A stretch of DNA of 64,000 nt. Source: Takakia lepidozioides (taxonomy: Eukaryota; Plantae; Bryophyta). The stretch spans positions 28,768,001-28,832,000 of the forward strand of contig CM060734.1 of assembly GCA_030704615.1 (NCBI GenBank), in the 5' to 3' direction. Positions 10,647-54,792 of this stretch are shown piece by piece. The position numbers were made by a program, and so were the translations under genes. How positions within the stretch are numbered: position 1 is the first letter of the stretch; each line of letters starts with the position of its first letter. The notes under the pieces were generated by a model. It was not told the DNA's origin. It saw nothing but the letters and a program-made list of their open reading frames with translations, and did not search any database.

Positions 10647-10649
10647 GGA

Positions 10650-17590: not shown

Positions 17591-18459
17591 TCAGCAAAAC
17601 CTCGATTTGGGCTTGTTACAGTGGAAGGTGCTTCTGATCTTTCTTGTGGTAACCATTCGTTGAGGTATTACTCGCAACTCCTTCTGGTGTGGTATTCTCA
17701 GTTTCTGGAGATCTGGTATCCCGATCTTCTGGATTATTAGTGTCAGCTTGTCTCGATGTCTCTCCTTGAAGAATATTAAGATTCAGTAGTTCTGGGATTC
17801 TACTCTCAATCGAGCTTCCCTTTCTGCTGCATATATTTCTAATCTCTCAGTCCTGTCTTGCTTAGCTTTTTCCCGATTTTCTTCATTCATTCCCACATCA
17901 TATATGGAATTCTTTTTAGTACCCTTTCATAAGCCTTTGGTATGTCAGTAAAGAAAATTACAGTGGTCTCTAACCTTTCTTCAAGATTATACCATCCTGC
18001 CAATCCATAGTAATCTTTCCTTACTGATTGATCACCAATCCTTTTAATGGGTACAATAATACCATTTTTCCTTCTCAGTGTATCTGACTTGTAACAAGTC
18101 TTTGGGTATCCAGTACTCTACTTCTTCTATGATCGTATGGCCATATTCATAATTTGAACAGCCTTCTTTGAGGACATAACTAGTGTAGCATACTTTTCTG
18201 ATTGGTAACAGAGTAATCAATAAAGCTAAACGAGAAAGCCAAATCTCACTTACACTCCTACTTTCCCATGGTGCTCGATCAATATTGATTACTCCTCCCT
18301 TCAATCCCCATTTACCATCTTCTTTCGCAATTGAAAGAAAAATCGCGCGTGCTTCTACTAGATGATTATATCAGATGCATCGACGACTTGTTTCTAAGAT
18401 ATGCATAGCATGATAAGCAAGCACGCACGATCGCGCGTGCTCCTTTATAGTTCAATTCC

Positions 18460-18650
18460 ATGCTGAATTTCAGAATTAGACTCAGGGGTGGGATTCAGTC
18501 CTGTGGAGGGGGATATGCCATTACGGATGTCACCATATCAAGGATTAAGCCAACGAGTTAGAGACATTGTTGATGGTCAGGCTTCTAGGGCATTGGTCGG
18601 CGATCAAAATTCTGTTGAAGTGAGTATTGCAGATTATGAGCTGTCCTGAC
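18460..18650 (+). pseudogene. Last exon of upstream cassette gene (homolog of 53774-53930)
   Basis: GVGFSPVEGDMPLRMSP aligns with AQGFTLVEGEEPLIMSP in ORF 53774-54424. Confidence 0.6.
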
Positions 18651-18789
18651 ACTTGTAAAACCCAATTTATAACAAACTTGATAAAACATCATAATCTTTT
18701 ACCAATGGAAATATTAACCTATTGCACAGTGATAGTCTCGTAAATGAATCAAAATTTATACGGAAGTCTAATCAACCGCATTTTCTGTA

Positions 18790-21700
18790 GATCCGTGAGT
18801 CCGATACGGAGGAAGTAACATATACCAGAACAAACGACACACAACAGTGTACAATGAAGAAACAATACGACTTGAGAGTGAGGATATCGTTGCCCAAGGT
18901 GGCAGCTTCAGAAACCGCAGGCGATCGCGCGAGGTTACTTATCGGAGGGGTCGACAAAAACATACCGGACGGCGAAAGACCCATCGCCGGTGGAATTGAC
19001 GGCGAAACCTCACCTGGCTTGGAGCAAGTGCCGCCAAAGCTGGTATTTCATTCTCCGCCTTCTGCTTTCCTTTCTGCATTCCATTGCGAAACAATTCCAA
19101 TGAATTAATAATTATTTCCTAATGGGCAGGATGATATGATCTATCCACCACACGACTGTTCCCAAGCTGTCCAACCCGCGGATTTCTTTGCTCTTCCAAT
19201 GGTTCCAAATGGATGTCAGCCCGGATATTATGTCCTGGTTCTGGATGTCGGGTTCCTATGTGAGGTCTACCTCCAGAATGGGCCAAAAACCCCTCCCGCA
19301 ACTCAGCCTTATATCTCCGTTGGAAGATTTAAGTTAGCAATGCGACATGAGATGGGAGACTTCCTCAAATGGTCGTCAAGAAGTTTTGGGTCATCTTATG
19401 GAACACTGGCAAAGAAGAGACTGTCGTGGATTTCAAATCAGCCTTGTTCGGGAGGAACGCCCACAAGGTCATGCATTACAGTTCCGACCAATGTGTGGAA
19501 CATAGACTTACTTTCAACACATATTGGCCTACGCTACCTAAAGCCCCAATCTACTTCAAACGACTTTACGACTTGTTCGTAGACCCCAACTCTAAAGCCT
19601 ACAGGTCTAACACCCTGCTTATCGACGTCGTTGGGAACATGTACAAGTCTTTCCTCAATCCTCTGAGCCTGGTCATCTTCCTACCTAAATACGAAGCACT
19701 TGTAGATTCATACAAGGATGATTTTTGATGGGTCATCTGAAGCCCCACCTGGAGAAGTTGAAGCATTAAAAAATGGACACTTGGGCCTTCAATGAGCAGA
19801 ACCCTTTTGGAATACCTAAGGATATTTACTTTCAGGATGCTAGAGTGAAATTCATTAATTGCTGGGACTTTCCATGGCCTAAGAACAAGGAGGAATGGGA
19901 TGCACATCTAAAGTACCTAGAGGCCTTGGAAGTGGAACATGAGATATTAAAGTGACTAGTTTTGAGAATGTATTGGGATTCTGAGGTCATTGAGTTCCTT
20001 ATCTGTTCATGGGATTCTTCTTTTCTTGATTTACTTAATTGTCTTTATGACTCCTTCACAGATCCGACAGCCTAGATCTCCACCTTTGAGGGGACCTCGC
20101 TTGATAATTTTTGACGTTAATGGAGTGCTATGCAAAATAACGAAGCGCCAGAGCCCAGGACCTACTCCACGTTTTTCGGAATTTGATTACAGCATTCATG
20201 CTATTGTTGGGTATCGCCAAATCTTTAGACGGAAGATGTACCGGGAAATTTGGCAAGAGTTACACAAGCACTTCGTTTTAGGTATCTGGAGCTGCATGGT
20301 GCTTAAAAACTTAAATGCTATTCTGGATTTTCTCCTACGTGGTCTTCCACGGCCAGCGTTCATCATGTCGCAGGAAGATTGTATCATTTGCCCAAGCAAT
20401 CTGCACCCAAATTACCGAACGGGACAAGATCAACCTCCTGTGTTCTTGAAACCACTCCTTAACGTATGACATAATTCTGAAGGTTTTTACAATCAGAGTA
20501 ACACTCTGCTGATTGATGATACGGCTTTGAAGTGTTTGCTGAACCTTCTTGAATCTTGTCTTGAGAACATTGACGCCGACGATTTCTTCCTTCTCAAACT
20601 TAGAGATTTCTTGCTTAGCTTCTTGAAATTTGAAAACGTCTCAAGCTTCTTAAAAGCAAGGAGAATAGGATTTCCACCTTTGAAAGTTAACGATCCACAG
20701 TTCAAGCCTCTTCTTGACTATATTGACAATTCACAATATCGTGATTTCCGAGTAAATGATAAGTAAATATTCGCGTCCTATTGTGGACGCAGTTTACTAT
20801 TTAAAATTGATTGTGAAGACCATGGAATTTCAGTCTTCTTCTGATATTCTTTTGCTTTGCATGCAAATTGTTATATTGCCAAACCATATGTAACGGTCAA
20901 TGGATTCGTTGTTGCTTTATGTCCGTCGATTTCTTTTCAGACCCACGCGTTCTTCCAACTCAACTTTGTTGACATATATTTCATTTGCAGGTATGCCCAT
21001 ATCAAAATGTTCTCCATGCCACAAATGCATCTCAAATTGGCGAAACAAATATCGTCTGGTATTGTTGATGATGTAGAAATGATCAAGCCAGAAGCTTTCC
21101 AAGGACCTGACAACTTGTTGTCTACTCAGGCATCCATTGCTGTTATGGAAAGTGTTTCGAGGCCCAAAATGTCAAAAGGTGAATCCACAGTTAGCAGGGT
21201 CGATGATTTAACTGGGGTTGGCTGCGTAGTGGAGAGCGACTCTCAATATTTTGGGGAATCCTCCTTGGAGCCGTCCTTCTCCCAACACTTTCCACCAGAC
21301 GTCGTCACGGGGGATCTACATGAGTCTACCGAACAATTGGTTGCAACTATCGCTCAACTGCCTCCTCATCATGTCGTAATTCCAAGCGAGTCACCGGATC
21401 ACGAGGGCTGGACACCTTAGCTGCTGATAAGTCAGGTGATTTATTTCTATTTCATCCATGCGTTTTATTGTTACCGTGTTTCTGTTCATCCTCTGATTTT
21501 CTCTCTTTACTCCAGGCCAGAAAAGCTGCAACGTATGACCTTCCTGTGAAGCGGCAACTTCTGTGGGGTTGTATTCCAAGGTAATCTTTTTTTTTCCGTT
21601 TGAATTCGGTTCAGGATGTGCAGAAAGAAAGAAACCGAATTCCATTGCCAACCGTCAGCGAGAAGGTTATTGAACTCACTCATTTGCCGATTGAGGTCAG

Positions 21701-22930
21701 CACACTGACAAGACCGGCAAATATTTCTGCACATCCCCAACCCCCCAGAATTCTGGATGGTCATGTGTCAAGGAAACGTCGCAGATCACAGCAGTCAGCG
21801 GCGGTCGTGTCCGACGATGAAAAAACAGCATCTGGCGTTCTGTTATCTCTTCAACATTCATCTGCCTCCAGTGGTAACCCGCCTCGAAATCAGAGGGTAA
21901 ATCTAGCAAAGGTAATAAGTATCTCCTTCACTTGGTCCTCTGTCTTATTGGTTATGGCTTCTTAGTAATCATTACATATATCATTTACATTGTCGACACA
22001 ACTTTCACAAAGTATCCTCGCGCGATCGCACGTGGTTGCAGGAAACACAGAGGCTACCGATTGTGATTTTTTGTCTCAAGTCTCAATTGGATGTTGTAAT
22101 GCTGAAAATATTACCTTAGCAAAATATTCCATTTGAAAATCAGGGTATAGAAACGAGGTAAACCACAAAACGCAAGTATGTCGTGGCATTTTTTGAGTTA
22201 CAAAATGTATTGGAAATACCTCATTTTTGGGTCAGATAACAGAAACTAATGGGCTCTTTTGGATGGTTCAGAACGTTGTTACTTAAGAAATGTGTGGTGT
22301 CCGGAAACACAAACGCATGTTGCTGGTACTGAGTGTCAATGGACTTCTTTGCTACATGCCACCTTCTACCGGAGGTGAGTTGTTTAAACAGAGGTTCCAC
22401 TTGAGGAAAGTAACAATTTGGGTACCCCGCAAGACCATTTGTAGTTCCAAGACCTGGAGTGCTGGAGTTTCTTCGACTTTCATTGATTCATTTTCATGTA
22501 GCGATTTGGTCTGGCTCTGAGAGGGATACTGTATTCAAGATGTTGGAGTGTTTCGTTCCTCCGGAAATTATGAAACAATTTCGTTTTATATGGTCTGCCG
22601 AGCATTGCACAGATACAGCTGGACATATTAAGCCTGGAATGAAATATCTTATTAAAGATATTAAGAGTATTCTCGTAAAATTTAGTGCGAAAGAATTTGC
22701 TTGGCAGGGGCAAATTCTACTGGTCGACGATGACCCTTCCAAGGCACTCCGAAACCCAGTGAATACTGGAGTCTTCCCCATCACATTCAAGGAATCAAGC
22801 AATTTGGAGGATTTGGTTGACCTCATCAAAGCTTTGTGGCCTTTTCACTCTGGCTTGACTGGAGCCCAGTCTGTTGTTGATTACGTCGGCAAGAACTCCT
22901 GCAAATCTTCCTGCCCTCCGATAGGTTGAA
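18790..22930 (+). pseudogene. Multi-exon gene with three FCP1/NIF-like HAD domains (cassette copy 1)
   Basis: Domain 1 ~19130-19950 (YVLVLDVGFL..ILWNT..NTLLIDV). Domain 2 ~20062-20760 (RLIIFDVNGVL..GIWS..SQEDC..FLKPL..TLLIDD..K..LN). Domain 3 ~22290-22929 (MLLVLSVNGLL..PRPGVLEFL..VAIWS..LLVDDDPSKALRNP). Frameshifts and stops; GT-AG introns. Confidence 0.8.
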
Positions 22931-24559
22931 ATCTTGTCTACTGGTCTTGGTTTGGAAGATTTATTGATGCTTCTGTTTGGCATCCCCCTCAAAAAAATCC
23001 CGATTATCTGGGTACGTAGTTTATCATTGCTCTATTTTGTGTGTAGTCCATCAGCTTTACTTCAACCTGCATTTGTACTTTTTCGTTTGTTGATTTCACA
23101 TGACTTTTGTGAGATCAATGATATTTCAATGATCTTTGTATTTTCTTTAACAATTCCCTTCTGTGCTGCCTCCACTATTCCAGTGACCAAATTCGACAGG
23201 AAAAGAAAGAGGAACGGCAGCGTAAGGCTGAGCGGAGGGACCGCGAGGCTTTACGTTTGTCAAGGTCATCAAGTACAGCTACCAGTGAGGTGTCTGGTCA
23301 TATCTTACATCAATCTCCTACTGTATCCATTTCCTCGGGTGCACATAATTCCGCCATCAGTGGTAACCGACGGCAATCTCGAACATATGCATTGAGTGTG
23401 AGCCGTTTGGGAAGCAACTCTGTGTTATTGATGAATTAAACTATGGCCGGCCTGTTCATTACACACATACGTTATTGAACTCTGCCAATGTTATGCCAGA
23501 TCCTTTCTGCTGTAATGTTAGTCATCGAAGTTTGAGAGAAATCACGCGTGATCGCGCGTGGTTTCTTCATATATTCTCTTGTGGAGCTATCATGGATTAG
23601 CAGTGCTATCAGATGTTATCAAAACAAGTTGACTTCATTGTCAGTTTAAGCAATAACAGATCAGGCTGGAGGCTGGAGGAGGTTGGAGGAGAAGAAATTT
23701 TCCAATGTTTTCATATTACGATGGGGAACAAGTGACACGATCATCGTCTATGACTGAATTCGGGTTCCTATCTCGTAATTCAAGCTCCCACGATGGTCGT
23801 CTCATTTGTTCCTGAGCGGATTGTGAAGCTCTGTTAAAATCTCTCTTCAAATGGATTGAAGTAATTTTGGCGGCTTCGAAATTCCTTCCCTGTCCAACTG
23901 ATGGCCACCCTGTGGTTGATTGAAATCTGGATGCATTCGGCTCGTTGTGGTTCTCAATGGCGGTAGAGGCAGAGATCTGTTGCGTGATCACTCGTGGTTC
24001 GAAAAGCGGACTTCAGCATCGTCCTGGTTCTCCAGCCGACTGCCAAAGTGTTATATTACCTCAACAGTGCAACATGTGATTGGTCAGAGTGATGTTTTTT
24101 CTATGCTCACGAATTCAACAACGAAAATGCTGTCATTTGAAGATGTGATGATTCTGCAGGCGTAGGGAGTTACTTCATGTCAGTTACAGCGAGGGAACTC
24201 AAGGTATTCGGATAATCCGTCCCGGAATATTTCACACCATCATCCTGGATGATTCATTGATGTGTTTTAGAACACGCACTCAAATCATCGAGGCTGATGG
24301 TGTCACTTGTTCCCTGGCGGATTGTTCAAGTATCTTATAATCCTAGTCTTTAAGTTGTTTGAAGTCATTCTCCCTGCTTGCATAATCCGATCTCCAACAA
24401 TTGACAGCATCCTCGTGGTGTTTTATTTGGTTCCTATATCCTTCGTTTGGAGATCCATTATTCTTTTGAGGAACACCAACGATTAACATCGCGCGATCAC
24501 GCGTGCTTTTCTAAGAGCTGACATGTTCTGATGTCCATCATTGCACACCAAAATGGTGT

Positions 24560-25400
24560 TACAAGGAGGCAGAATGTCAGCAATTGAACGTCAATCTCCA
24601 GCGACATTCTCGCCATTTTCATGTGGACTGGACGCCAAAGGAGGAACACCGTCGCTAACAATCTGTGCAAACAATCTCAACAATCATATATACTTCAAGG
24701 TGTTTGATACTGCGTATGTTCATGTAGCTGATTTCTATATGAGTCTTTTTGCTATTCTCATTCCAACAACATTAGGTCCACTGAGACTGCCATATTCCGA
24801 AATCGGAATCAGGCACCACCTACATGAAACCATCAGCTAAGAATGAAATCTCCAGTTCATTCAATCACAGCCCGGAGAAATATCTCAAGCTGCTAGCCAA
24901 CTACTTGTGGGCTAGGGTGTTTATCTGGAGTCGCATACAATGAATCAAAGATCTAGTTGTCAGCTGACATGCAGCTGATGGTTTTATATTGATCAATGAT
25001 GGTGGGCCGTGGCTGATACGGGAGTCTGAATATGACAGTATCTGGGGACCTGATACAGTTCGCATGAGAATAGCAAAACGACTACTATACAATTCAGCTA
25101 CAGGAACAACAATAGCATCAAACACCTAGCAGTAAATATAATTTTTGACATTGCTTGTGACAGCTCCAATCAATAGTTAGTTGAAGATTATTTAGTTGGT
25201 GATCAATTTATGAGTGCTTTACAGTAAATCGTCAGAAGTACCACAGCCCGTCACAGATGAACCTCGACTGGTTACCCGACACTATTTCCTTGAAGATTTT
25301 GCAGAAAACGTCACTCTCTCCATCAACGTACTCGCCACCGAGCCACTCTCCAGAAGCATACGAGCAACATACTTACTCCCCAATTGGATACTTTCAGCAT
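24560..25400 (-). pseudogene. Possible Ulp1/C48 protease-like remnant
   Basis: Ordered motifs WLGGEYVDGE..FCKIF..FICDGLWYF, DAIVVPV..SRFAIL..ILSYSDS, and VPPLASSPHENG mimic the Ulp1 motif order. Catalytic His/Cys positions are not conserved. Confidence 0.35.
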
Positions 25401-26096
25401 CTTACTCCAGGGTCAGTTACTTGGACATTATGTTTTGAAGAGCATACGAGTAATTCATCATCTTCGCGATTCATTGAAAGTCTGCAAGACCACCAATTCT
25501 TCGAGAAGTACAGCTGAACTTCGGTTGCACAAGACATTGTTGGTTAGCGTAATATTGGAGGATATTTTTTGTGAGGTCATCACCATATCAACGATTCTCG
25601 AGATCAGCATTTCATGTACTTCTTCCATTAACCTTCGGAACAACGGAAGAATACAGATTTGAAAATGGTCCCTCTAACCTTGTCAAAATATCGTGATTTT
25701 GGGAAATGACTTTCCTCAAAATATTCTCATCATAAGTACGTCGGCCGACATCGTCTTGTGCTAACGGAGTTCAGCCCTCCTTCTAGAAGTTGATACTCTC
25801 ATTGACATGGTTTACGTTACTTATATTGGTCCATGCCGCATGGGGCGAGACTTACTCAAATTGACATGGTTCTGAAATAAAACCTGGTTGTTTATCATCA
25901 ATGTCTCCCCGTTGTCTTTCATTTCATTTCATGGTATTGTGCCATTGTGCCATGTTTTGCTTACATATTTGATTGATTTGTCTTGTACGTTACATAGTAA
26001 CGGCCTTCATAATCTCAGTCGCGGTTACAAATATGACTGGTGCTCCAATCATCCATCAGGCCGTGGATCATGAGACGAGTTATCACCCGACACCCG

Positions 26097-26320
26097 TTTT
26101 TTTAATTTATTTTTTAATGTAATGGAAACACCTGGGAGCGACAGCTCACAAATCAGGCCCCCTTAATAGTATAACCTCTTTCACAGTAACCCCGCCATGT
26201 GGCGTTGGAATGGGACACCACCCAGGAACATACCACACTCGTCAGTAGCAAGATTTGACCCCATCATCATCTTGGTGGCACTCAGTGCACTTCACCGACT
26301 GAGCTACTGACTGTTGGTAT
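26097..26320 (-). mobile_element. tRNA-derived SINE
   Basis: Minus strand GTAGCTCAGTCGGT (A box) ... GGGGTCAAATC (B-box-like), short body, A-rich tail AAAAAATAAATTAAAAAAA. Confidence 0.7.
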
Positions 26321-26699
26321 CTCATTCAACTCTTACTAAACGTCAAGTGAACAGTGGAACTTGCTTTATGAGCCAAATAAAAACTGTTTTTTCTCCTGAA
26401 GTTTACATATAATGTTTCTTTATTGCTCATATTATATATTAATAGACAAACAATTATTTATATCTTTATATTTATATTTAAAATGATCCATTTAAATTCA
26501 TTTAAATGATTTAAAAAATACATATTCAGATATTTCTCCTTATTTCTGGACCAAGCTTTAGTCCAGATTTACTTAAAATTGTGTTATCTGTTTTCAAAAC
26601 CATTCTGTTTTTTTTTTAAAAGAAAATTACCTCAACAATAGTTTTTGAGGGAGGTGAACAGTTGAAATCTTAATATGATTTAAAGGGCCTCCGTCCTTA

Positions 26700-26939
26700 T
26701 TTTATTTTATTTTATTTTTAAACCAGACCCTAGCACATACCAGGCTGGTATGACTTTTAAAATTTTGCTTAATACCATACCAGTCAGATTTTCACTTTGA
26801 TACCCTACCATATACCATATCAGGCTATTAAATTTATACATCATTTGATACCAGTACCATACTGGTTTCAATAATTCAAGTGTACCCCAATACCTTTACC
26901 CTAGTGGTATCAAAAAACCATGATACCAGTCCAACACTG
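26700..26939. mobile_element. Right end of hAT family related to 9277-9957
   Basis: Ends GATACCAGTCCAACACTG with repeated ATACC motifs; left end not found. Confidence 0.65.
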
Positions 26940-27070
26940 GTATGTACCACCCTTAAACTATATGCAGTTCTTATTCAAGTCCGGGAAGTTTGCATGGTAC
27001 CACAGTGCCTTCCATATGGCATTCTCTCTCCCTCTCCCTCCATGCCATTTAAACAAATAGGAGAACATAT

Positions 27071-27750
27071 GCCTCTCATTGTTTGATAATTGCGATTTCA
27101 ATGCGGGCACGTGTGGTTGCGGCGGGGCCCGCATGTGGGAGAGGGGGTCGCGACGGTTGGGGCGCCCCGTACCCGGCGGCAGTCAATTTGCTCGGGTGAG
27201 CCGCCCCGGGGCGCCCAGGGGAAGCGAGAGGGGGGAGCGAGTCTGTTGGGCCCACAAAACACTTGAAATATGTAGATAAATAATTAATTATTTCAAGGGT
27301 TTGTAGAAAGTAGTGGGAAGTGTGGTGGTAAAGAGCAACTTGTGATGAACATGAGGTTTGGTGTTCAAGTCTTGGTAGGTGATATTGTGGTGGTAATGTG
27401 TGTTAATTATAAATATATATTTTGTTTGAAGAGGGTCTGAAGGTTGGAGTTAGGCACTTGCCAGTTGGTCAGTCCGCTCGTCAATCGCCAGTCTGGTGAG
27501 TCGGCTCGCCAATAGCGAGTCTGCTGGTTAGTCCGCTCGCCAGTTGGAGTCAGTATGCTGGAGGAATCAGTCTCTTGGAGGTCTGGCCAGTCCGCTAGAA
27601 GAAGGTCCGCCGCCATTAAAGAACTAGGACTTAGAAAAAATTGAGAATCTAGACCCGGTGAAAGGCTGTTGGGTTCATGAGCTCACCCCATGGGCCGTAC
27701 TGGCGGGGCCCATAGGCGCATTAAATCGCTATTATCCTATAATGAGAGGC
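27071..27750. mobile_element. Mutator-like MITE, 9-bp TSD
   Basis: TIRs GCCTCTCATT..GATAAT.GCGATTT / AAATCGC.ATTATC..AATGAGAGGC; AGAACATAT at 27062-27070 and 27751-27759. Confidence 0.92.
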
Positions 27751-28452: not shown

Positions 28453-28700
28453 CCCCAAGAGAAAGGGCTGTGGATCAATAAATGTAGTACTTCTTTCAAG
28501 GATGTGGGCAATACTTGGGAGTATGAACCTGATTCGCAGACGATAAGGAATTCACATGTAACCAATATATCACAGACCCCCAAAGACAAAGGGCAGTGGA
28601 TCAAAAAATGTTGGACTTCTTTCAAGGACAATGGCAATAGTCGGGAATACTCGGGAGCAAGAACCTGATTGGCAGCCATGCGAAGGTTTTCACATGTATC
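28453..28700. repeat. Diverged tandem duplication (~125 bp)
   Basis: AAAGGGC.GTGGATCAA.AAATGT.G.ACTTCTTTCAAGGA at ~28461 and ~28588. Confidence 0.75.
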
Positions 28701-33888: not shown

Positions 33889-33955
33889 GGGGGAGGAAGA
33901 AGAAGAAAGTCCACCGTTCAGCCTGAACGGTGGACTTTCTTCTTCTTCCTCCCCC
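33889..33955. repeat. Perfect 33-bp-arm palindrome
   Basis: GGGGGAGGAAGAAGAAGAAAGTCCACCGTTCAG-C-CTGAACGGTGGACTTTCTTCTTCTTCCTCCCCC. Confidence 0.95.
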
Positions 33956-34045
33956 TTTTTTTTTTGGTTGTATCATGGTTCAAAACCCTAATTATCTCTT
34001 AGGTATTGACTTTTTGATATTCTGTGTAGGGTAAGATCTAAGACA

Positions 34046-38581: not shown

Positions 38582-40540
38582 AGATGGTATTTTGTAAGGT
38601 CACCCGCGTAATGACTTTTGTTGTTCATGACATTTTTGCAGGACATACGAATATAGGTGTTAGTTGCTCATGTAAAGTTTCACATCGAATTGAAATCACA
38701 CGGATGGTATTTTGTAAGTTCACCCCGTGATGACTTTTGTTGTTTATGACATTTTTGCAGGACATACGGATGTAGGTGTTAGTTACTCATGTAAAGTTTC
38801 ACATCGAATTGAAATCACACGGATGGTATTTTGTAAGTTCACCCGCGTAATGACTTTTGTTGTTCATGAAGTTTTTACAAAACATATGAATGTAAGTGTT
38901 AGTTGTTCATGTAAAGTTTCAAATCCAACTAAAATCATACGGATGTTGTTTTGTAAGTTCAGAGGTGTGACGATTTTTGTTGTTCATGAAATTTTGGGAG
39001 GATCTATGAAGTTTTGTAAGTTCACTGGTGTAATGATTTTCATTGTTCATAAAAGTTTTGTAGGACCTATGAATGTAGGTGTTAGTTGCTCATGTAAAGT
39101 TTCAAATTCAACTAAAATCATACAGATGGTGTTTTATAAGTTCACTGGTGTAATGATTTTTGTTGTTCATGAAATCTTTGCATGACCTATGAATATAGGT
39201 GTTAGTTGCTCATGTAAAGTTTCAAATCCAACTAAAATCATACATATGGTGTTTTATAAGTTCACTGGTGTAATGATTTTTGTTGTTCATGAAATCTTTG
39301 CATGACCTATGAATGTAGGTGTTAGTTGCTCAGGTAAAGTTTCAAAACCACCTAAAATCATACGGATGTTGTTTTATAAGTTCACTGGTGTAATGATTTT
39401 TATTGTTCATGAAAGTTTTGTAGGACCTATGAATGTAGATGTTAGTTGTTCATGTAAAGTTTTAAATCCAACTAAAATCATACAGATGATGTTTTATAAG
39501 TTCACTGGTGTAATGATTTTTATTGTTCATGAAAGTTTTGTAGGACCTATGAATGTAGATGTTAGTTGTTCATGTAAAGTTTTAAATCCAACTAAAATCA
39601 TACAGATGATGTTTTATAAGTTCACTGGTGTAATGATTTTTTTTGTTCATGAAATATTTGCATGACCTATGAATGTATGTGTTATTTGCTCATGTAAAGT
39701 TTCAAAACCACCTAAAAGCATACGGATGTTGTTTTGTAAGTTCACTAGTGTGATGATTTTTATTGTTCATGAAAGTTTTGTAGGACCTATGAATATAGGT
39801 GTTAGTTGCTCATGTAAAGTCTTAAATCCAACTAAAATCATACAGATGATGTTTTATAAGTTCACTGGTGTAATGATTTTTTTTGTTCATGAAATATTTG
39901 TATGACCTATGAATGTAGGTGTTAGTTGCTCATGTAAAGTTTCAAAACCACCTAAAATCATACGGATGTTGTTTTGTAAGTTCACTGGTGTGATGATTTT
40001 TATTGTTCATGAAAGTTTTGTAGGACCTATGAATATAGGTGTTAGTTGCTCATGTAAAGTTTCAAATCCAACTAAAATCATACAAATGGTGTTTTATAAG
40101 TTCACTGGTATAATGATTTTTGTTGTTCATGAAATCTTTGCATGATCTATGAATGTACGTGTTAGTTGCTCATGTAAAGTTTTAAATCCACCTAAAATCA
40201 TACGGATGTTGTTTTGTAAGTTCACTGGTGTGACGATTTTTGTTGTCATGAAATTTTGGGAGGATCTATGAATGTAGGTGTTAGTTGCTCATATAAAGTT
40301 TCAAATCCAACTAAAATAATACGGATGGTGTTTTATAAGTTCACTAGTGTAATGATTTTTGTTGTTCATGGTATTTTTGTAGGACCTATGACTGTAGGTG
40401 TTAATTGCTGATGTAAAGTTTCAACTCCAACCAAAATCATACGAATGGTGTTTTGTAAGTTTAGGAGTACAATGACTCTTGACGCTTATGATATTTTTGT
40501 AGGACGTATATATGTAGGGGTGTTAGTTGCTCGTGCAAAG
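38582..40540. repeat. Satellite array, ~16 copies of a 120-bp unit
   Basis: Unit ~GATGGTGTTTTATAAGTTCACTGGTGTAATGATTTTTGTTGTTCATGAAA..GACCTATGAATGTAGGTGTTAGTTGCTCATGTAAAGTTTCAAATCCAACTAAAATCATAC with 120-bp spacing. Confidence 0.97.
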
Positions 40541-40629
40541 TGCAAAATGTATGTTGTATCTGTAAGAGATCTGTAAGGGTGTGCTCTTATTCTTACCAAG
40601 TCAATGCAAGGGATTATCATATTATCATA

Positions 40630-42553: not shown

Positions 42554-42566
42554 ACTCTAGACCCAC

Positions 42567-45500: not shown

Positions 45501-46241
45501 CCCCTTCTACTTCAAGCAGGTTTGCCTGAAACGCGGGCTGGCGATTTCCTCCATTTGCCCGGTTGCGACGTTCCCGCGCACGTTTCACCAATTCTTGTGC
45601 GAGGTCGTAGCAGTTCCGCATCAAGTGACCATTCTTGCCGCACCAGTTGCACGGTCCCACGGTTCTCCCTCCTTGTCCTCCAGATGTGCACCATGTGTCA
45701 TAGCTATTGTTGAACTGTGGAGTGCGATTGCTCAGTGATGCATTACTGAACGACAAAGCTAACGCCTTTTCCTTGACTACAGAGCTCTGACCCTGTCGAA
45801 ACTTCATGCGAGCCTCAGCCTGGTCTTTACTTCACGAAATTAACAACAGTGATGGAACAAAGCTCACATCCTCTCACATCAATACTCTCAACTACTCTCG
45901 GAGCAAGGCTCACGGAGTGATCTTAACTACGACGTACTCTCACATAACTCCAAGAGCAAAGCTCACTGTGAACAACCTCGCTACTCTGATACCATACTGA
46001 TCTTCTACAATTACTCACCACACAGGTTCCGTTCACCTCCATTAAACTGGGTTAAATACATTCCAAGTCCCGTTGCAGGGACAAGCGTTAGGCTACTACT
46101 AGTAATCATATTATGTTAAGCTCTGTACATTCTAACAAGACTAACTGGCTAAGTGTAACTGCCTTGACTCCTTCGAACCTGCTCAGGAGTGATACGTAGA
46201 TTACACCATATCTGGTGTCAACAACTAGCGTATCCGCCCCT
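42567..46241 (-). pseudogene. THO3: THO complex subunit 3 (TEX1/THOC3, WD40) 3' exons, disrupted by a copia insertion
   Basis: Exon pieces 46229-46241 + 44244-44302 (GADTLVSLWDVSEMLCVRTFTKLE), 43768-43846 (WRVRTVSFNHDGGYIASASEDLFIDI), 42843-42975 (SEVESGHSVHQIPCHAAMNSVEWNPKYNLLAFAADDKNKYQADE), and a tentative last exon ..FESQTAA* (stop 42567-42569). 5' exons not seen. Confidence 0.9.
44303..46223 (-). mobile_element. Internally deleted Ty1/copia LTR retrotransposon
   Basis: 229-bp LTRs 44303-44531 and 45995-46223 (6 mismatches by eye); TSD ACTAG (44298-44302, 46224-46228); tRNA-Met PBS TGGTATCAGAG; PPT; gag knuckle CNWCGKNGHLMRNC; VLYVPG; WHRRLGH; QQADILTKPL. Confidence 0.96.
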
Positions 46242-46789
46242 GTATGCAAAGAGGTACATTCTTGTGAGAGATTCATAACCCAGTAGAGAAAAATCCTTCC
46301 CATGGTTCTCACACATCAAACTCATCTGAGGACTAGAATGGAGAGTTGTCTGTATCGTATATTATGATAGGCACTAACACAATACCCAAATTTCACGTGA
46401 TAGACAATGGGTCTGAAGAGGCATGTACCAAGAATTTTGTTCACCCGGAGATCAGTTTGATTCCCAGTCACAGATTTCACACTCCATTTTATAGCACAGC
46501 AATAACACCTCAGCACCTCAATCTATGAGCAAAGTCATGTGTTCTCTCATAGGTACATGAGAGATTCATGACTCAGTAGAGAAATATCTTTTACATGGTT
46601 CTCACAGAGCACACCCAACCCAAATCCCTTATTTGAGTGGTGGCAAACACTAAAGAGAGAAGAAGATGGTGAGAATCATGAATGGTGTCCATGAGATCTT
46701 GTGTTTAATCCCTATTAGATGCCACATGTGTTAATTATGAAATATTTTGTGAACTCGTTCTTCTACAGTGAAATTTTTTCCAAGTCCTT

Positions 46790-47020
46790 ATTTCTTCTAT
46801 GCCGCGCGAGCGTGGCGGACCTCCAGAGTGCACCCGGCGGATGGGCGCCCCAGCCTCCACGGACTATCTAAAATGGATTGTCCACCCACCAATGGACCGG
46901 GTGGGTGGAACGGACTGTCCACAGCGGACCGTCGAGTGGCCTGTTCAGAGGACCTGATGGGCATGCTTGGGTTATGACGTAACTCCATTGGCCCGTACTG
47001 GCGGGCCCACGGTCGCATCG
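46790..47020. mobile_element. Fragment related to the Mutator-like MITE at 27071-27750
   Basis: TTGGGTTATGACGTAACTCCATTGGCCCGTACTGGCGGGCCCACGGTCGCAT resembles 27669-27721. Confidence 0.55.
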
Positions 47021-48830
47021 ACCAGATGTTAGGATCATTACGTGCATTGGAAAGGGGTGACACTCTAGTCAATCTTCATTTGCAAATGGCTTGTACATTA
47101 TATGTGTCTAGTTTATTGATGTTAATCAGACACCAAAAAAGAACTTGGATGGGATGATTCGAAAGTTGCAACTCTAGGACATGTAGTTGAATTGCAAAGC
47201 CCTTTGAGGAAATGTTTGCATTTTATTGACATGGCTATTGTTTGAAAATCATCGACAAACCTGGTTTCAAATTTGTGCTCTGCAATGTCAGTTCTGAACA
47301 GATGCAGCACAGACTTGATGAATACATCAAGTATGGCGTTTCATCGATAAAAAATCGAATATGTCTCATAATTCAAAATTTATTTGAGCGCGCACAGATG
47401 TGGTCAAAACACAAAATACGAAGACAATTTGATGGTTTATATGTTATAAAAAATACTTGAATAGGGTATTATTAATTGTAATGGTACTAATTTATATAGT
47501 TATTTTAGGGATTTTTATAATTTCAAAATATATATATATATATATATATATGGGTATTTTTTATTGGATGATGAACGCACGTTATATGTTAATTTATGAG
47601 CACTGCACCCCCAAGTCCTAGGATCTAACACTAGTTGCATATCATCATGGTGAATAGAGGAATCTATTTTTATCCACAATGAACATGAAAAAATTCATCT
47701 TTTTTATTTCATAAATTGTTCAATTAAAAAAAAGATGTTCCTTGAGGTAAGTTGGAGAAGACACATCAATGGAAGTAGTTTTCAGCAAAGGAGAGGAGGT
47801 GACACTTGAGGAAAGCACAACATATGCTTAGTGATTTTGACACATGCCCATAGTCTCTTCTTTAGAATGAAGATCAGGAGCCAACAAATTTAGCATGTGT
47901 ACATACTAGGGTAAATGATCATATCACTACCAAGTTAACACTTTCAATGTGTAATTATACAGGTAAATGATGATTTTTGTTTTTTTTTTCATATATGGCT
48001 AGATTAGGCAATGTAGGATAGAAGACCCTGTCATGGCCAAAGACCCTATAATTGCCATGCCAAAGTACCCTATCTAGGCCATTTTTGGGCCTATATGAAT
48101 TAACTTATAGACCCCATTACAGCCACAAGTACACCCATAAAAGCCACCCTCATCAAGGTCACCATGATGCTGCAACTTGTGTCTACCAAGTTAATGTCAA
48201 TTAAGCACTACATATATTAGCAGACCAGTTCTGACCAAGACATATGCAAATATTGGCTTAACCAATGATTTACAATTTATCTCTAATAAAAATAAGATCT
48301 TCTAGGACTATGACAACCACCATACATTAATTACACCTGAAAGATAAGAACGAATCAATTTGAGATGGCCACCATGCATAAATGCAACCTAAAATTTGAA
48401 ATTTTAATAGTTGCCTCCTCCACGAGCTTGAAGCGTTGCCGCTCAATTTGTGGTCCCTTCATCTGGGTAGGCTGAGTAGTTCTCACATCTTCTTCATTCC
48501 CTCCCTTATCTCTCTCTTCCTTGCAACACCAACCTAACTTGTCTTTTGTTTCTAGAGCAGTTCAGTCTTGGCAGAGTTTTCTGGCATTGATAAGCTGTTC
48601 TTTCTTGCTTATGGTAATTTCTATTTGGAAGAGTTTCATGTTTGTAAAATATGAATGCTTCACATTTTAGCAATGATTTAGATCTCATTATCAAGATTGT
48701 AGTAGCAATCTAGTATTTAAGTTCAATGAAAAATGGGAGAGTGGAATGCCACATGGTAATTCTAGTGAGGGTATAAGCAAACCACTCCATGCAGATTTGT
48801 TTTTTACATTCTACAAGTTGAGTATTTATC

Positions 48831-49112
48831 ATTTCGCCATGAAAACCTGTATGTGCCTGCTTATACCCAGAATGAACACACTGAGGGCATTATTGTCTGA
48901 GATTCATTTCGCCATGAAAACCTGTATGCGACTGCTTATAATACCCGAAATGAACACACTGAGGACACTGTTGTCTGAGATTCATTTCGCCATGAAAACC
49001 TATATGCACCTGTTTATACCCAAAATGAACACATTGAGGGCACTGTTGTCTGAGATTCATTTCGCCATGAAAACCTATATGCGTCTGTTTATACCCAAAA
49101 TGAACACACTGA
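48831..49112. repeat. Minisatellite, ~3.7 x 75 bp
   Basis: ATTTCGCCATGAAAACCT at 48831, 48906, 48984 and 49059. Confidence 0.93.
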
Positions 49113-49290
49113 TGTCTGATACTAGAGCTTCCCGAAAACTGTATATGCCTGCACACACCCTAGATGAAAGCATTTCGAACTGTATGCACATGTGCATATA
49201 CTAAATGGTCAACCCCAGTTTTCTTTGACATATTCATTCCAAACCCTATGCGCCATGTTCCACAACCTGCAGTGGCTGCACTTGATAGTT

Positions 49291-52200
49291 CTACTGAGGC
49301 TTCGGGACAGATTGTGGGATCCAAACACGAGGATCAAGATATCTTCCATACCAAGCCCAATAGGCGTGGTCGCGACCAATAGGCTTATGAGAACACTTGG
49401 CAGGGTTCTCGCTGATGTAATCTACGACTGTTGAAGCTGCAGTCATCTTCAATATATATGGCCACACTATTTTTGTCATATCATCCTGGTCAACCAAGCC
49501 CTTTGGTGATGGCTTGAATGAAATAGAGAAGAATCCAGTATTTGGTGGGTTTCGGAGGCCCTTTGAGGGCTCATCATCGACAATGAGTATTTGTCCTTGC
49601 GTTGCAAAGGGTGTACCAGGGTACTTCAAGGCAAGAACAGTGTAAATATCCTTCACAAGATATTTCATCCCAGGCATGATGTAACCGGTAGTGTCTTTGC
49701 AATCCTCAGCTGACCAGATGAAGCAAAACTTCTTTGCAATTTTCATGGGAACTAAGCACTCCAGCATCCTACAAAGAACAGCTCTTTCAGCACATGACCA
49801 AATTGCCACGTGAAAATGCGTCAACGCAAGGTTGAGAAACTCCAAGACTCTGGGCCGGGGAACCACAAAAGGTCTGTCGGGAACATGAACTATAACTTTC
49901 CTGAAACGAAATCTCTCCTTAAACAATTCACCGCCGGTTGGAGGTGGCTGGTAGCAGAGGAGTCCGTTGAAACTCAATATTAACAACATCCGTTTCCTCT
50001 TCCCCGGTGTGGCAGATGAAGGTTGATGGACGAAGCCATCGTGCGCAATTTAAGGAAATTCATTTCAGTGTTTACGCCGTCAGAAACAACACGATGTAGT
50101 CTTTATTAGTTTCACAGTGACATCTACGTTTGCCGAGACATAAATGTCCCGGGAACGGACTATTTTAAAGGATCTAGAGTAGACAATATATCGAAGAGGA
50201 GAAATCATGAAAAGAGGAACGTCGGCTATCAAGTAGAGGTCGGGAGGCGTATTCAAGAAGTTATGCGGCTCCATCCCCGCCTGTGTAAAAATGACGGAGT
50301 TAGTTTGGGACCGCAAAACAAACTGCAACCGAAAGTGGAGAAATGGTTTTGAAATTTACCATTGAATGTCTCGCAGAAGAACAGTGGATTCCTGCGGGCT
50401 TGGATTGACGAGGCGCCACAACATCTGAGGAAGTCCTCATGTGTTTGGAGTCCGTTTTTTTTTTCTTGTCAACTTTTTGTCCGTTGGAAAGATTTCCTGC
50501 AGAGGAAGGAAATGGCTCGGGGGTTCTTTTTCGCCTCTTTGGTGCAAAACATTGTGCCACCAGTTCAGGGTCAGGCTGTGTCGATGTAGGAGATGTTTTG
50601 CCATTGAACGACATGGGGAGTAGAGGGGCAACAACAGGCAGGCACAGGAAATTGTTGCTTGAGCACTCGACATCCTGGATGGAATGAAAATGCAACGAAG
50701 GAATAATTTACCTCGGAACTGCATTCCAATGCAGACGTCGTTTGACAGGAAGGTCATAATCTGCAGATTTTCTGACCTGGAGTGACAGATGAACATCAGA
50801 CCCCAAACTAAGTAAAACTAGGAGAATGAGCAAGGAGCGAGAAATGAGTTTAAGTCACCTGACTCCTGCAGATTTGGGCTGTCCAACCCTCGTGCTGGGA
50901 AGATATGCGAGGAAGAGACGGAACAAGGTGCAGCGGAGCCGTAGCCAAGTCGTCGATGGTTTCCCTTCGGATTGGAGAGACCAGACCTTGCGTATTGAAC
51001 GGAGAGGGTGAGGAATGTTGGGTAAGGTCGATTAAGTTTCCGGCATATTTTTGTTCTTCAACTGCACCTTGGGCTTTAGACCCAGGAGGACCCAAGTGGA
51101 GAAGAGTGTCGGCCGCTTCTTGAGAGGCAAATAGTATGACCAAGGATCCACCCTCAATTTGAGAACCATCCTGAACCATCGGAAATCCTTCAATACTCCG
51201 ACGCACTGCTGATCCGGAGGTTTCCCTTAGGGGACCTGAGGAATGGTTGACATCGTCAACATCTCCTTGAACCTGCTAAAGAGACATAATCATCAATCCG
51301 GGAGTGCAGGAATGTGAACCTCCACTGAACAGTGGAGGTTACTAGATATAGTCATGTCCCCATATAAAGTCATGTATGCTCTGGGATTGGGATGGCCCCG
51401 AATGTGCGTCGAAAAATTCAACATCAAATGAGTGAAAATGAGAGTACCATATCTAATCCGTGTGTGATTACAAGGCAATGAAAATCAGACACCATGAAGA
51501 TATTCAATAGCTCGAGAGAGAGGGGATTGCTCAATAATATCTTTATTTTGAAGCATCATATCTGAGACTCTTAAAACCGTTGTCAACTTGTCCTCAATAT
51601 AATCCAAGAGTGGCCTAAACTTGGGATCACTTAAAACATTTGAAAAAAGACTCAACCCTATCCATCAGTCTCTACGGTCTGGAACGGTTTGAGAACAAGA
51701 CATGAATCGGGCGGGTTCAATACACACTTCATGGCGGTGTCGTCAATGAGCAGAATGTTACTCTTGGTGTACTGTCCACCAAATCTCTGCCAGACCTTCA
51801 TCAGTGGCTTCAAAAACAAATGAGGAGGGTCCAATCTGGATTTAACTTGAGGGTGAACCGAAGTAGGACAGAAAATACAATCCTCTTGAGACATAACGAA
51901 GGCCAGTTGAGGGAGACCACGAAGTAAAAAATCCAGGATGGGCTGCAAGTTCTTATACATCATAGAGCTCCAAATCCCTAACCGGAAGTGTTTCTGCACC
52001 TCTGTCCACACTTCGCGATATTTCTCCCGTCTAAAGACAAGTCGGAATCTGACAAGAGCTGGTATTCTGTAGTCTGTTTCTGAAAACCGGGGGACATTGT
52101 AGCTCTTTTGGTGCTTCAAGATTTTGCACAAGACTCCATTCATGTCAAAAATTATCAAACGCAACCCTTGCGCAGGTGGAGAAACAGGTGCTCCAATTTG

Positions 52201-53560
52201 CCAGAGAGTCATTCATACTTAAGATGATAAAAAGGGAACAATACAATGCATTGGAAAAACCGACCCAAGGCAAGTGAACAAGAACGTTCACTGGACAGCC
52301 GAGGTTCACCAAACTCTATTAAAATATCTTATGTCCCACTGCAGCGGCACGCAACTCATGATTGCTAAGGAACTTCTGATTTGTAAGCTGTCGGGTCTTC
52401 CTCAGCGAAAATGTCGTAAAGCCGTTTAAGTAGATGAGATTTTTGGGAGCTTTAGGCTATTTTGAGTTGAATGTCGATCTATGCATGACGGAATTGTCAC
52501 TGTTGTAAGTTCTGGCCTTGTAATAGTACTTCCCGAACATGGCTTTGGCAATAGTCTCGACATTCATTTCAGGTCCCATGTTCCAAAAACAAACGGCAAA
52601 CTTTTTGACGGCCCATTTAATGAATTTGTGAAGACCGTTTCACGTAGCTAACTTGAATTTCCCTGCGGAGATACAAGGCTGGGTGGTAGGAGGGGCTTTC
52701 TTTCCATCCTTTAGGTAAACCTCACGAAGGTAACCGATGTCCAGAACCAGGACGTAATATCCTGACCGACATCCATTCGGTCCCCAAGGAAGGTCATGTA
52801 GATCGTTTGGATTGATAGAAATGGAATAGTCGACTGGAGGGTAATGCATGTTGTCCTGTGGAATAACAAAAGAATTCATTATGAATTTCAACTTCAGTAA
52901 GCCCAATGTAGAGAAACGGGAAAAAGGAGTTGAAAGGATTACCGTTTTCGGGGGAGGCTGCTGGGTTCTGCTCCTCCTCTTTCCCCTCTCTCCAAGAAAT
53001 GCTATCCTCCGATTCTATGGCTCCAGATGGCAACGTCGACTGTCCAGTGGAGGTTACTTGTAGGACCGGCTCAGGTGGGCGACACTGATTGTCCGATCCA
53101 CCTGTCTCTTCACCGTCTCAGTCTCGATGGAGTCGGTTCGTGTGTGTGTGATCTCCTCAGATGTCGTCTCACGAATCTACAGGAAATTAGGAATCCGATG
53201 GATGAGAAGTATGGTGGGCATAGTGATCCGACAAAATTATCGAATTGAACAATACCGAAGATGAGACTAAAAGACTAAAAGACCAAAAGACTAATAAGAA
53301 TAAAGCCAATGGAGTACCCGCTTCGGGGTCTGTTGTTGGATTCCGTGCTTGTGCTGCTCAATATCTTCTCCTTCCCCTCGAGTATGAGGGTTCTCTAACT
53401 CATTCCCTGCAGATGGCAACGTCGACTGGACAGTGGAGGTTAGTTCCAAAACTGGCTCAGGTGACCTGACCCTCATTGTAAGATCCACCTGTCTCTTCAC
53501 TGTTTGAGTCTCGATCGAGTCAGTTCGTGTGTGTGTGATTTCCTCCGATTGGGATTCTTG
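49291..53560 (-). pseudogene. Multi-exon gene with three FCP1/NIF-like HAD domains (cassette copy 2)
   Basis: Same order as copy 1: domain 1 ~52860-52330 (YYVLVLDIGYL), domain 2 ~52203-51560 (RLIIFDMNGVL..ILLIDD..KCVLNP), domain 3 49989-49291 as an open 232-aa ORF (MLLILSFNGLL..ILIVDDEPSKGLRNP). First exon duplicated (53020-53160, 53410-53550). Confidence 0.82.
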
Positions 53561-53773
53561 GATCTACAAGAAAAGTTTCGAAACAGTTAGTGGTTGTCCT
53601 GATGGATGTACGATCGGACGAAATTCCTGGTGGAAATGTGAATTTTTTTTTTTCAAAAGTCCAGAATAAAGGAAATGGAAAAAACATTTGGATTATTCCA
53701 TTCACAAGTTTGAATAATTACAATATTGTCATATTCTATTCAGAAGTATGTATGAATAAACATTCTCTATATG

Positions 53774-54792
53774 TCATTCGTTATCTACATCCAGAACCAC
53801 TTGCTGGGTGACATTCTGGGAGTCATCCTGGGTCACCACCTCGCGAGGATTGTTAACGGGAGCCGGGGACATAATCAATGGCTCCTCACCTTCCACAAGT
53901 GTGAACCCTTGAGCTAAGTTTTCAACTAACTCTGTCGACGTTGCTTCATGGCCCCTTGGAGAAGCCGGATTTTGATTCGTGGTGTTATCGAAAGAGGAAG
54001 AGCTGTCCAGATTGTGTACACTTTCTGGCGCAACGCGTTCTTGGGTATGTGGAGTACTCCCAAGTGTCTCCAACCCGAAAATTTCCTGGCCCTCTCTTCC
54101 CCTTTCCCACATCAGTCGCATCTGCCCCTCGTCCTCGGTGACGATATCCATGTTCTCATCTTCGTCTTGATTTTTGTCTTTCTCCTCTTCCTCGTCTTGT
54201 TCTTGTTTTTCCTCCTGTTCCTCGTCCAACTCTTTGTCGTGTCCTTCCTCATCCTCTTCTTCGTCCACTTCGTCATCCTGCAGGGAGTCTCCGTCATCTC
54301 CGTCTCTGGCGATAGTTTGATTATCAATCTGAAGCGTCTTGAAATAAGCCTCCACCTTGCTTCTACAAAATTTCTTTTTCGTTATGTGGTTTATATCAAG
54401 CACCCGAATATTTCTTGCCTGCAAAGAAACCCAACAATGAAATCAAAATAAATCTGACGAACTGTAACGACCGAAAATTTTAAAAGGTAACTGGTTTCTA
54501 TTGAGACAACTGGCATCGATAACAAATACCCCAAACTCCCAAAACATGAACCTCCACCGTCCAGTGGAGGTTCACTATACCAGACTCCAGACAACGGTTA
54601 AACATCGTAGAAAAAAACGGAGAGACAAATCCGACTACAGAAAAAGTGAAAAAGTAATGCGAATCCACTTACAAGCAGAACGTATGTCATTGCCACTCCG
54701 CCGAAAACGTTGTTACATGACATCCCGTCTCTGCAAAAAAAGGAGACCAGGTAATCGTAGGTGTCCCCCCTCAGCTCATGAGTGTAAGTCAT
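53774..54792 (-). pseudogene. 3' part of a putative beta-class DNA amino-methyltransferase-like gene with acidic tail
   Basis: Spliced reading YTHELRGDTYDYLVSFFCRDGMSCNNVFGGVAMTYVLL|ARNIRVLDINH (GTAAGT..TTGCAG intron) resembles the N6/N4-MTase C-terminal pattern (P..KP..L..L..S..GD.VLD.F.GSG..AA..GR..IG.E). Followed by a D/E-rich tract. Confidence 0.4.

Follow-up and report, generated by a model that had tools for sequence, protein, structure and literature searches.

Decayed copies of a triple NIF-domain gene related to a high-copy repeat in the moss Takakia lepidozioides

We analyzed a 64,000-nucleotide stretch of the Takakia lepidozioides genome (assembly GCA_030704615.1, contig CM060734.1, positions 28,768,001 to 28,832,000 of the forward strand), which is called the window below, with positions counted from its first letter. 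The window harbors two diverged copies, A and B, of a cassette whose exon-like blocks include three domains of the FCP1/SCP phosphatase fold (NIF, PF03031), termed D1, D2, and D3. Both copies lie in inverted orientation, 26 kb apart with their tails facing each other, and transposons were later inserted between them. A preliminary description of this DNA had reported two inverted, diverged copies with the same block order, which was borne out by alignment: four blastn blocks of 67–81% identity, every one inside exon-like blocks, and coding blocks that are colinear in tblastx with 55–73% amino acid identity. Overall, the exons share ~68% nucleotide and ~60% amino acid identity; introns can no longer be aligned, and neither can any other sequence between the blocks. 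The best-conserved stretch is a 65-nt mini-exon, with 81% nucleotide identity compared with 67–69% in the three other blastn blocks.

Both copies are dead. Copy A is devoid of exon 1 and of most of the acidic exon, and its reading frame is interrupted by a frameshift in D1 near 19375–19387 (a frame change in tblastx), an in-frame TGA in D2 (20467–20469), a TAG ahead of the linker donor (21418–21420), and a frameshift near 22426 as well as an in-frame stop at 22927–22929 in D3. Copy B is truncated at the 3' end of D3 (49312) and has lost 84 bp relative to its family at ~51662. Its D1 contains two in-frame stops (TGA at 52642–52640, TAG at 52459–52457) as well as a frameshift, and is degenerate in the C-terminal part. 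A short tandem array of 75–78-bp units (48829–49112) abuts the end of copy B homology at 49312 and may be part of the sequence that truncated this copy. The coordinates of all parts are collected in Table 1.

Table 1 Parts of copies A and B, their shared blocks and their palindromes (positions in the window)
Feature	Positions	Strand	Remarks
Copy A unit	18342..24505	+	blocks colinear with copy B; extent set by its own palindrome sites
Copy A acidic/'tail' exon remnant (GFSPVEGDMPLRMSP...)	18488..18619	+	sequence read; tblastx to B 53908-53864
Copy A exon 0b (IRESDTEEVTYTRT...PPKL)	18791..19042	+	84 codons, phase 0 to 0
Copy A NIF-like domain 1 (VLVLDVGFL)	19130..19725	+	tblastx; phmmer for C-terminal half
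Copy A NIF-like domain 2 (LIIFDVNGVL)	20062..20760	+	start after CAG acceptor
Copy A 65-nt mini-exon (ARKAATYDLPVKRQLLW...)	21516..21580	+	blastn 21492-21553 / 50800-50739; splice signals read
Copy A basic exon, nuclear localization signal-like SRKRRRS	21615..21911	+	99 codons, phase 0 to 0; sequence read
Copy A NIF-like domain 3 (LLVLSVNGLL)	22305..22986	+	Pfam, tblastx
Copy B unit	49312..54826	-	member of high-copy subfamily; read-contig depth
Copy B putative exon 1	54673..54792	-	ATG, 40 codons, GTAAGT donor; sequence read
Copy B exon 2, acidic D/E tract and GFTLVEGEEPLIMSP block	53801..54418	-	206 codons, phase 0 to 0
Copy B exon 0b, first copy	53318..53563	-	holds palindrome site 53418-53441; alignment and sequence read
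Copy B exon 0b, duplicate	52943..53176	-	1-nt deletion and stop; palindrome site 53032-53055
Copy B NIF-like domain 1 (VLVLDIGYL)	52377..52855	-	tblastx, sequence read
Copy B NIF-like domain 2 (LIIFDMNGVL)	51661..52197	-	intact 184-amino acid open reading frame; Pfam NIF E 9e-8
Copy B 65-nt mini-exon	50712..50776	-	sequence read
Copy B basic exon, PKRRKRT and KKKK	50360..50674	-	105 codons, phase 0 to 0; sequence read
Copy B NIF-like domain 3 (LLILSFNGLL)	49315..50001	-	intact 232-amino acid open reading frame 49291-49989; Pfam NIF E 7e-8
GF.VEG..PL.MSP block	A 18491-18535 / B 53908-53864		same order in both copies
'EE.T.TRT' block	A from 18791 / B from 53563, duplicate from 53176		same order
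D1 block	A 19127-19608 / B 52858-52377		same order in both
D2 block	A 20047-20562 / B 52212-51697		same order in both
Linker block	A 21379-21584 / B 50915-50708		same order in both
D3 block	A 22305-22986 / B 50001-49315		same order in both
Palindrome A, ~AACC-ACGCGCGA/TCGCGCGT-GGTT	18424..24503		copy A only
Palindrome B, AACCTCCACTGnnCAGTGGAGGTT	51317..54572		copy B only

The preliminary description had split each copy into the tail of an upstream gene and a separate NIF gene. In both copies, however, the 'tail' block reaches a GT directly after a complete codon and ahead of the in-frame stop, following ...SVE in copy A (18619|GTGAGT) and ...TQQ in copy B (53801|GTGGTT), and the next block opens exactly at a phase-0 AG acceptor (18791 in copy A; 53563 and, for the duplicate, 53176 in copy B). 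Exon 0b ends in ...PPK(L/R)|GTA in both copies, and D1 likewise starts at a phase-0 CAG acceptor in both. The copy A remnant of the acidic exon thus ends in phase 0 at its GTGAGT donor, and exon 0b of this copy is bounded by an AG acceptor in front and a GTATTT donor behind. At D2, the acceptor reads CAA in copy B where copy A has CAG. As canonical, in-phase GT/AG sites join the blocks, the 'tail' more plausibly represents an internal exon of one single gene, and the two-gene model was given up. The simplest reading of these signals would be a single gene of ~5.5 kb whose product comprises, in order, an N-terminus, an acidic tract and the domains D1 and D2, followed by a basic linker and D3; between D2 and D3, the exon structure is tentative. 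Searches and fold predictions were performed exon by exon. For the acidic exon 2 of copy B, they yielded no Pfam match, including at a lenient threshold, and no sequence match in the PDB; a weak, sub-threshold resemblance to a leucine-rich-repeat cap with acidic tail in Atlas (score 0.81) serves as a lead only. In two public runs guessed to be RNA (X6 and X7), contigs of 90–95% identity cover exon parts alone. The match of one such contig ends at 52197, corresponding to the position of the CAG acceptor in copy A and hence to the predicted D2 acceptor, and that of another ends within the predicted acidic exon, 4 nt from its start. These ends hint weakly at transcription and splicing of paralogues. 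The loose ends of the RNA-labeled contigs gave no significant alignment to the upstream exons.

Three domains with a NIF/HAD fold had been proposed, and all three were recovered, with Pfam support for D2 and D3, phmmer support for D1, and structural support for D3. Pfam NIF scores amount to 32.7 bits for D3 and 32.4 bits for D2 of copy B, and 28.1 bits for D3 of copy A (cut-off 21.8 bits). For D1, a local phmmer search linked the C-terminal half to NIF proteins (E 1e-8 in copy A), the sole NIF match of this domain. With a profile of alignment A4, which combines D3 with its relatives, UBLCP1 (3shq, E 1e-11) and SCP1 were retrieved among solved structures. The AlphaFold model of the 232-amino acid D3 open reading frame of copy B has a mean predicted local distance difference test score (pLDDT) of 84.9, and Foldseek aligned it to SCP2, SCP1, SCP3, CTDNEP1, TIM50, and UBLCP1 at E 1e-8 to 1e-5, with template modeling scores (target) of up to 0.74, and also to FCP1. 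Concordance of Pfam, profile and model matches makes the assignment to the NIF fold sound.

None of the three domains carries the catalytic DxDx(T/V) motif. Motif I reads DVG/DIG in D1, DVN/DMN in D2, and SVN/SFN in D3 (copy A/copy B), and the consensus of family contigs at D3 (place 49971) is SVN, as in copy A. In line with the earlier proposal, these states are common to both copies and older than their decay. D1 (DxG) and D2 (DxN) hence keep the nucleophile Asp alone, and D3 (SxN) keeps neither Asp. The acidic pair of motif IV is maintained in D2 (LLIDDT) and D3 (ILIVDDE / ILLVDDD), and lost in D1 of copy A, which has IDVV at this position. The motif III Lys is kept in D2 and D3, and its column is invariant in alignment A4. 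Such losses of catalytic Asp suggest that the domains would bind phospho-ligands, either non-catalytically or as substrate traps, rather than act as enzymes.

To place these domains among known proteins, a HMMER search of 1.84 billion representatives was evaluated, which retrieved no relative above 27–29% identity over the domain, save one 120-amino acid fragment at 39%. The best relatives are all of plant origin, namely Helianthus, Sphagnum, Selaginella, Impatiens, and Trifolium proteins. Those of Helianthus are annotated as 'FCP1 domain, HAD superfamily' proteins and combine two NIF domains with DUF724 (KAM0004709.1); the Sphagnum relative is a protein of 588 amino acids with two NIF domains, annotated on chromosome 2 in S. 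fallax (KAH8970694.1) and S. magellanicum; and the Selaginella relative XP_024520960.1 is found among FCP1-homology proteins with the motif LDxNGLL. In fact, all of the plant relatives carry LDxNGLL, and the Asn two residues after the nucleophile position (D+2) is nearly invariant in alignment A4. Tandem NIF domains therefore also occur in host genes of this subfamily; their second domains vary at motif I, with DIGG in two and also MDG, LNS, and VSG. The presence of LDxNGLL across the plant relatives indicates that the general-acid Asp had been lost in the ancestor of a land-plant-wide host subfamily. The earlier suggestion that the Asp loss is shared between the copies and predates their decay stands, with the qualification that the Asp-to-Asn exchange is not peculiar to the cassette and is fixed throughout this subfamily. 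D3 shares with it the D+2 Asn, WSS, NTLLxDDSPYKAxxNP, and the C-terminal NPxGQ...W.FY extension, without the nucleophile Asp. Judged from the 25–30% identity in alignment A4, D3 appears to be a distant member or a derivative of the LDxNGLL subfamily. Identities between cassette and host domains range from 25 to 34%, and cassette domains are 24% identical to each other, compared with 40–56% among the moss, lycophyte, and angiosperm host proteins themselves. A metagenome scan with D3 and a scan with the copy B palindrome retrieved no paralogue.

The divergence between the copies bears a signature of constraint. Across 568 aligned codons (Nei-Gojobori), the proportion of synonymous differences (pS) is 0.69 and thus saturated, and the nonsynonymous distance (dN) is 0.31, yielding a ratio of nonsynonymous to synonymous change (dN/dS) of at most 0.17. 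Exon 0b behaves similarly, with a proportion of nonsynonymous differences (0.35) below the synonymous one (0.71). Saturation at synonymous sites together with the low dN/dS indicates that the A and B lineages split long ago and that the protein was kept under purifying selection. After this long period, a few recent stops and frameshifts hit each copy. The stops are partly of the CGA-to-TGA or TGG-to-TAG/TGA type. Compared with copy B, family contigs differ by T>C at 100 and A>G at 84 places, against C>T at 46 and G>A at 52; copy B accordingly has an excess of T/A where family contigs have C/G. Such a bias is the pattern expected from deamination in a methylated, silenced repeat, which may have been the fate of copy B.

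Whether copies beyond these two exist was addressed by matching contigs of public runs to copy B (49200–55000) at a minimum of 80% identity. One DNA run (X1) contributed 2,063 contigs, which cover the introns as well: 264 at >=99% identity, 537 at 95–99%, 825 at 90–95%, and 437 below 90%. The sole listed contig of this run without differences from the window has a depth of 51. Summed depth, by comparison, reaches 12,000–18,000 over D3, ~8,000 over D2 and D1, 3,000–5,500 over the acidic exon, and 2,800–3,900 over introns. Across 49200–54825 it ranges from 1,600 to 18,000, and beyond 54826 it drops to only 341. At the opposite edge, family contigs part from copy B left of 49312, and one loose end resembles copy A just after D3. 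The family that includes copy B can therefore be put at ~10^2 copies with 80–99% identity, an order-of-magnitude estimate from depth. A family of this size, amplified with its introns, rules out a two-copy local duplication, the outcome that the preliminary description had named as its own refutation, and supports the mobile-element interpretation of that description, which had anticipated a large family.

Each copy further contains its own set of palindromes. Both palindromes span 24 bp with AACC...GGTT edges, and differ in their cores. The palindrome A core CGCGCGATCGCGCG occurs at five sites in the window, all within copy A (18424–18437, 18918–18931, 22019–22032, 23545–23558, and 24490–24503), versus 0.01 expected; a half-site lies at 18342–18356. 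Palindrome B is found at four sites (51317–51340, 53032–53055, 53418–53441, and 54549–54572) plus a weak one (52283–52306), all within 51.3–54.6 kb, versus zero expected. The site in exon 0b, degenerate in copy A (18913–18936), occupies the same alignment columns in copy A and in both exon 0b copies of copy B, with AACC...GTT edges in common and the core exchanged. A palindrome site is likewise located ahead of the acidic/'tail' exon in both copies. Positions that are partly conserved, together with sequences that are uniform within a lineage and different between lineages, are expected of sites co-evolving with a lineage-specific factor. The NIF gene yielded no DNA-binding domain. A resemblance between the copy B palindrome and one at 33907–33937, within an element labeled P-like, was dropped because the similarity is at chance level.

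Two partner genes had been suggested in addition to the NIF gene, one methyltransferase-like and the other encoding a Ulp1-like protease. Neither could be substantiated. Pfam was surveyed with 253 stop-to-stop open reading frames of at least 70 amino acids from the whole window and with 87 of 45–69 amino acids from 23–29.1 kb and 42.5–49.3 kb; among these 340 frames, there was no match to a methyltransferase, to ParB, or to Peptidase_C48 (PF02902). Scans at lenient thresholds of the copy A 3' flank, the acidic exon, and plus-strand frames at 6–13 kb did not return any of the three either, and a scan for the catalytic Cys motif of C48 (Q..DCG) gave nothing credible. Just upstream of the copy B ATG, the sequence encodes NPPY (54837–54848, minus strand), a look-alike of motif IV of amino-methyltransferases. 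It overlaps an apparent polypyrimidine tract and AG acceptor, and is thus probably not a methyltransferase motif; it may be the source of the methyltransferase-like impression. From the proposal of mobile-element remnants, we therefore retain the element, on account of its copy number, and discard the methyltransferase-like and SUMO-protease-like cargo; the anti-silencing or transcription-hijacking role that was raised with it is speculative.

On balance, the evidence favors a reading in which a single multi-exon gene, now dead at both loci, was carried, introns included, by a high-copy, DNA-level repeat, this gene most likely being an accessory (non-transposase) gene of a DNA transposon. Its NIF domains would descend from the land-plant LDxNGLL subfamily, in which the general-acid Asp had already been lost. 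The protein would be nuclear and combine three FCP1/SCP-fold domains with a short N-terminus, an extended acidic tract, and a basic exon resembling a nuclear localization signal, and the palindromes would be binding sites of a lineage-specific factor. The A and B lineages would have parted long ago while purifying selection acted, with decay setting in after insertion of the present copies; such selection implies that the protein was useful to whatever carried it. Several points speak against this reading. Neither the Pfam survey nor a search for terminal inverted repeats (TIRs) between the unit edges tied a transposase, a TIR, or a target site duplication to either copy, so that carriage by a transposon is deduced from copy number; as both copies are truncated, the ends of the element may simply be missing. 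Copy number itself was measured on the copy B subfamily alone, with summed contig depth as a crude proxy, and both copies are dead, with none intact seen. The 65-nt exon leaves phase 2 and the next conserved exon is in phase 0, rendering the exon model between D2 and D3 inconsistent, and that runs X6 and X7 represent RNA is guesswork. One palindrome site is situated inside a putative coding exon (exon 0b, seemingly translated), which is awkward for a pure binding-site function. Finally, D-x-N HAD domains could have slow or unusual catalysis. No Helitron-like CTRR was detected at a fixed distance from the palindromes.

Other origins of the cassette were weighed against the same data. Host NIF genes or fragments might have been captured once or twice by a transposon, in the manner of Pack-MULEs, Helitrons, or CACTA elements, and then amplified while remaining functionless for the element, selection having acted in the host before capture. 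Tandem-NIF host genes of the LDxNGLL subfamily do exist in plants, the window shows no linked transposase, and both copies are dead, all of which fits passive cargo. Yet the cassette domains are far more distant from host proteins than these are from each other, A and B have the whole multi-exon architecture in common, and one palindrome site is homologous in position between them, an arrangement not easily explained by two separate captures; we regard passive capture as unlikely. Similarly unlikely is a reading of the unit as the 3' half of something larger, a gene or module that an element of Sola1-like, Mutator-like, or CACTA type would carry and that would comprise ParB-like and methyltransferase-like parts and the three NIF domains, with parS-like palindromes serving the ParB-like part. 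Dispersal of lineage-specific palindromes through the unit would suit such a module, but the window offers no support for ParB or a methyltransferase, the NPPY look-alike coincides with a splice-acceptor-like tract, and family depth ends ~35 bp upstream of the copy B ATG. An ordinary host gene family, with A and B as an old, local pair of inverted paralogues turned pseudogenes and the contigs derived from a large dispersed family, would account for the tail-to-tail arrangement of copies just 26 kb apart with later transposon insertions between them, and for the low dN/dS. Host families are nevertheless unlike a set of ~10^2 copies at 80–99% identity including introns, no protein closer than ~39% identity exists in a 15-billion-protein collection, and the C-to-T/G-to-A leaning of copy B resembles deamination in a silenced, methylated repeat, making this origin very improbable. 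Beyond the question of origin, the transposon accessory gene favored here could be imagined as a self-recognizing module, in which a nuclear, acidic, triple NIF-fold pseudophosphatase acts together with the lineage-specific 24-bp palindromes dispersed through the element, for instance by docking onto or shielding RNA polymerase II's phosphorylated C-terminal domain or another phospho-protein at the element's own copies, and thereby promotes transcription or counters silencing. Protein and palindromes would co-evolve from subfamily to subfamily in such a scheme, by analogy to the logic of VANC on a different fold. We give this scenario little credence at present.

Within transposon biology, accessory genes are understood least, and the small number investigated so far, VANC among them, proved to manipulate host silencing. 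Host-type domains retained under selection in a second gene are known from DNA transposons, including Ulp1-like proteases in Kaonashi/MULE (Mutator-like) elements and TnpA of CACTA elements. These domains differ from NIF, and no Ulp1 or TnpA domain is present in the window. VANC is an anti-silencing accessory gene of the Arabidopsis VANDAL (Mutator-like) elements, whose short targets accumulate in non-coding regions of the element itself and differ between related elements (PMC5735166, PMC10398659). The lineage-specific palindromes of the cassette recall this pattern. VANC targets are often tandem repeats of a short motif, whereas the cassette contains dispersed 24-bp palindromes, and the two genes are unrelated in sequence and fold, so that the comparison is an analogy only. 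A full-text literature search returned no report of a transposon-borne FCP1/NIF-type domain, and phosphatases are unmentioned in the Arabidopsis atlas of transposon products.

With respect to the fold, the FCP1/SCP phosphatases SCP1-3, CTDNEP1, UBLCP1, and FCP1 (NIF, PF03031) share with the cassette the motif I strand, WSS, the Lys, and the NTLLxDD motif IV. The cassette differs by the absence of DxDxT, by three domains plus an acidic tract in one polypeptide, and by its high copy number in place of a single host gene. Closest are the plant LDxNGLL proteins, with the D+2 Asn, the C-terminal NP.GQ..I....W.FY, and tandem NIF domains in common; they are, however, low-copy, have two domains instead of three, show the 25–34% identity given above, and possess neither acidic exon nor palindromes. 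Ser at the nucleophile position, as in D3, is absent from this host subfamily except in a few members. A precedent for a NIF fold serving as a binding module instead of an enzyme is TIM50, which in most lineages is devoid of phosphatase motifs (PMC8346121). The D3 model matches it structurally, but TIM50, a single-domain mitochondrial membrane receptor, is not a specific relative. The combination of lost catalysis, purifying selection during amplification to ~10^2 copies, and subfamily-specific palindromes would make this gene a testable candidate for a new element–host interaction in transcription or silencing, and the finding draws attention to the conserved, uncharacterized DxN 'pseudo-NIF' host subfamily found plant-wide. 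As the copies in the window are dead, they alone add description rather than function.

The window is plant nuclear DNA, and its remainder is rich in transposon debris. A gypsy fragment with reverse transcriptase/RNase H (13.7–14.8 kb) and a copia gag-pre-integrase fragment (44.9–45.3 kb) lie on the minus strand, and the large element labeled P-like occupies 29–42.5 kb, between copies A and B, and includes a tandem array of ~2 kb with a period near 120 bp (38582–40541). A 214-amino acid open reading frame (9990–10634, minus strand) has no Pfam match and was read, from its translation alone, as the C-terminal part of a non-LTR (long terminal repeat) retrotransposon. Two frames of 378 and 498 amino acids at 2744–5427 (minus strand) are rich in Pro, His, Thr, and Ser, display a GC skew of 0.33–0.47 and no Pfam match, and look like low-complexity sequence rather than genes.

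Directly upstream of copy B and on the same strand, an open reading frame gives a sub-threshold Pfam match (E 2.5e-4) to a B3 DNA-binding domain, of which it carries the C-terminal half. A GC-rich stretch with four GCGACG...CGTCGC palindromes comes next, and read depth over this region is ~6x that of a single copy; these features lie at 54792–55511 (minus strand) and 54892–55200. Further along, an intronless Skp1 frame of 167 amino acids (58315–58815, minus strand) contains both Skp1 domains and is at most 72% identical to known Skp1 proteins, which would make it either a divergent paralogue or a retrocopy. Two short open reading frames within 17–29 kb or 42.5–58.5 kb gave weak Pfam matches to the THOC3 beta-propeller (WD40; E 1e-7 and 4e-5) and may be a host gene fragment.

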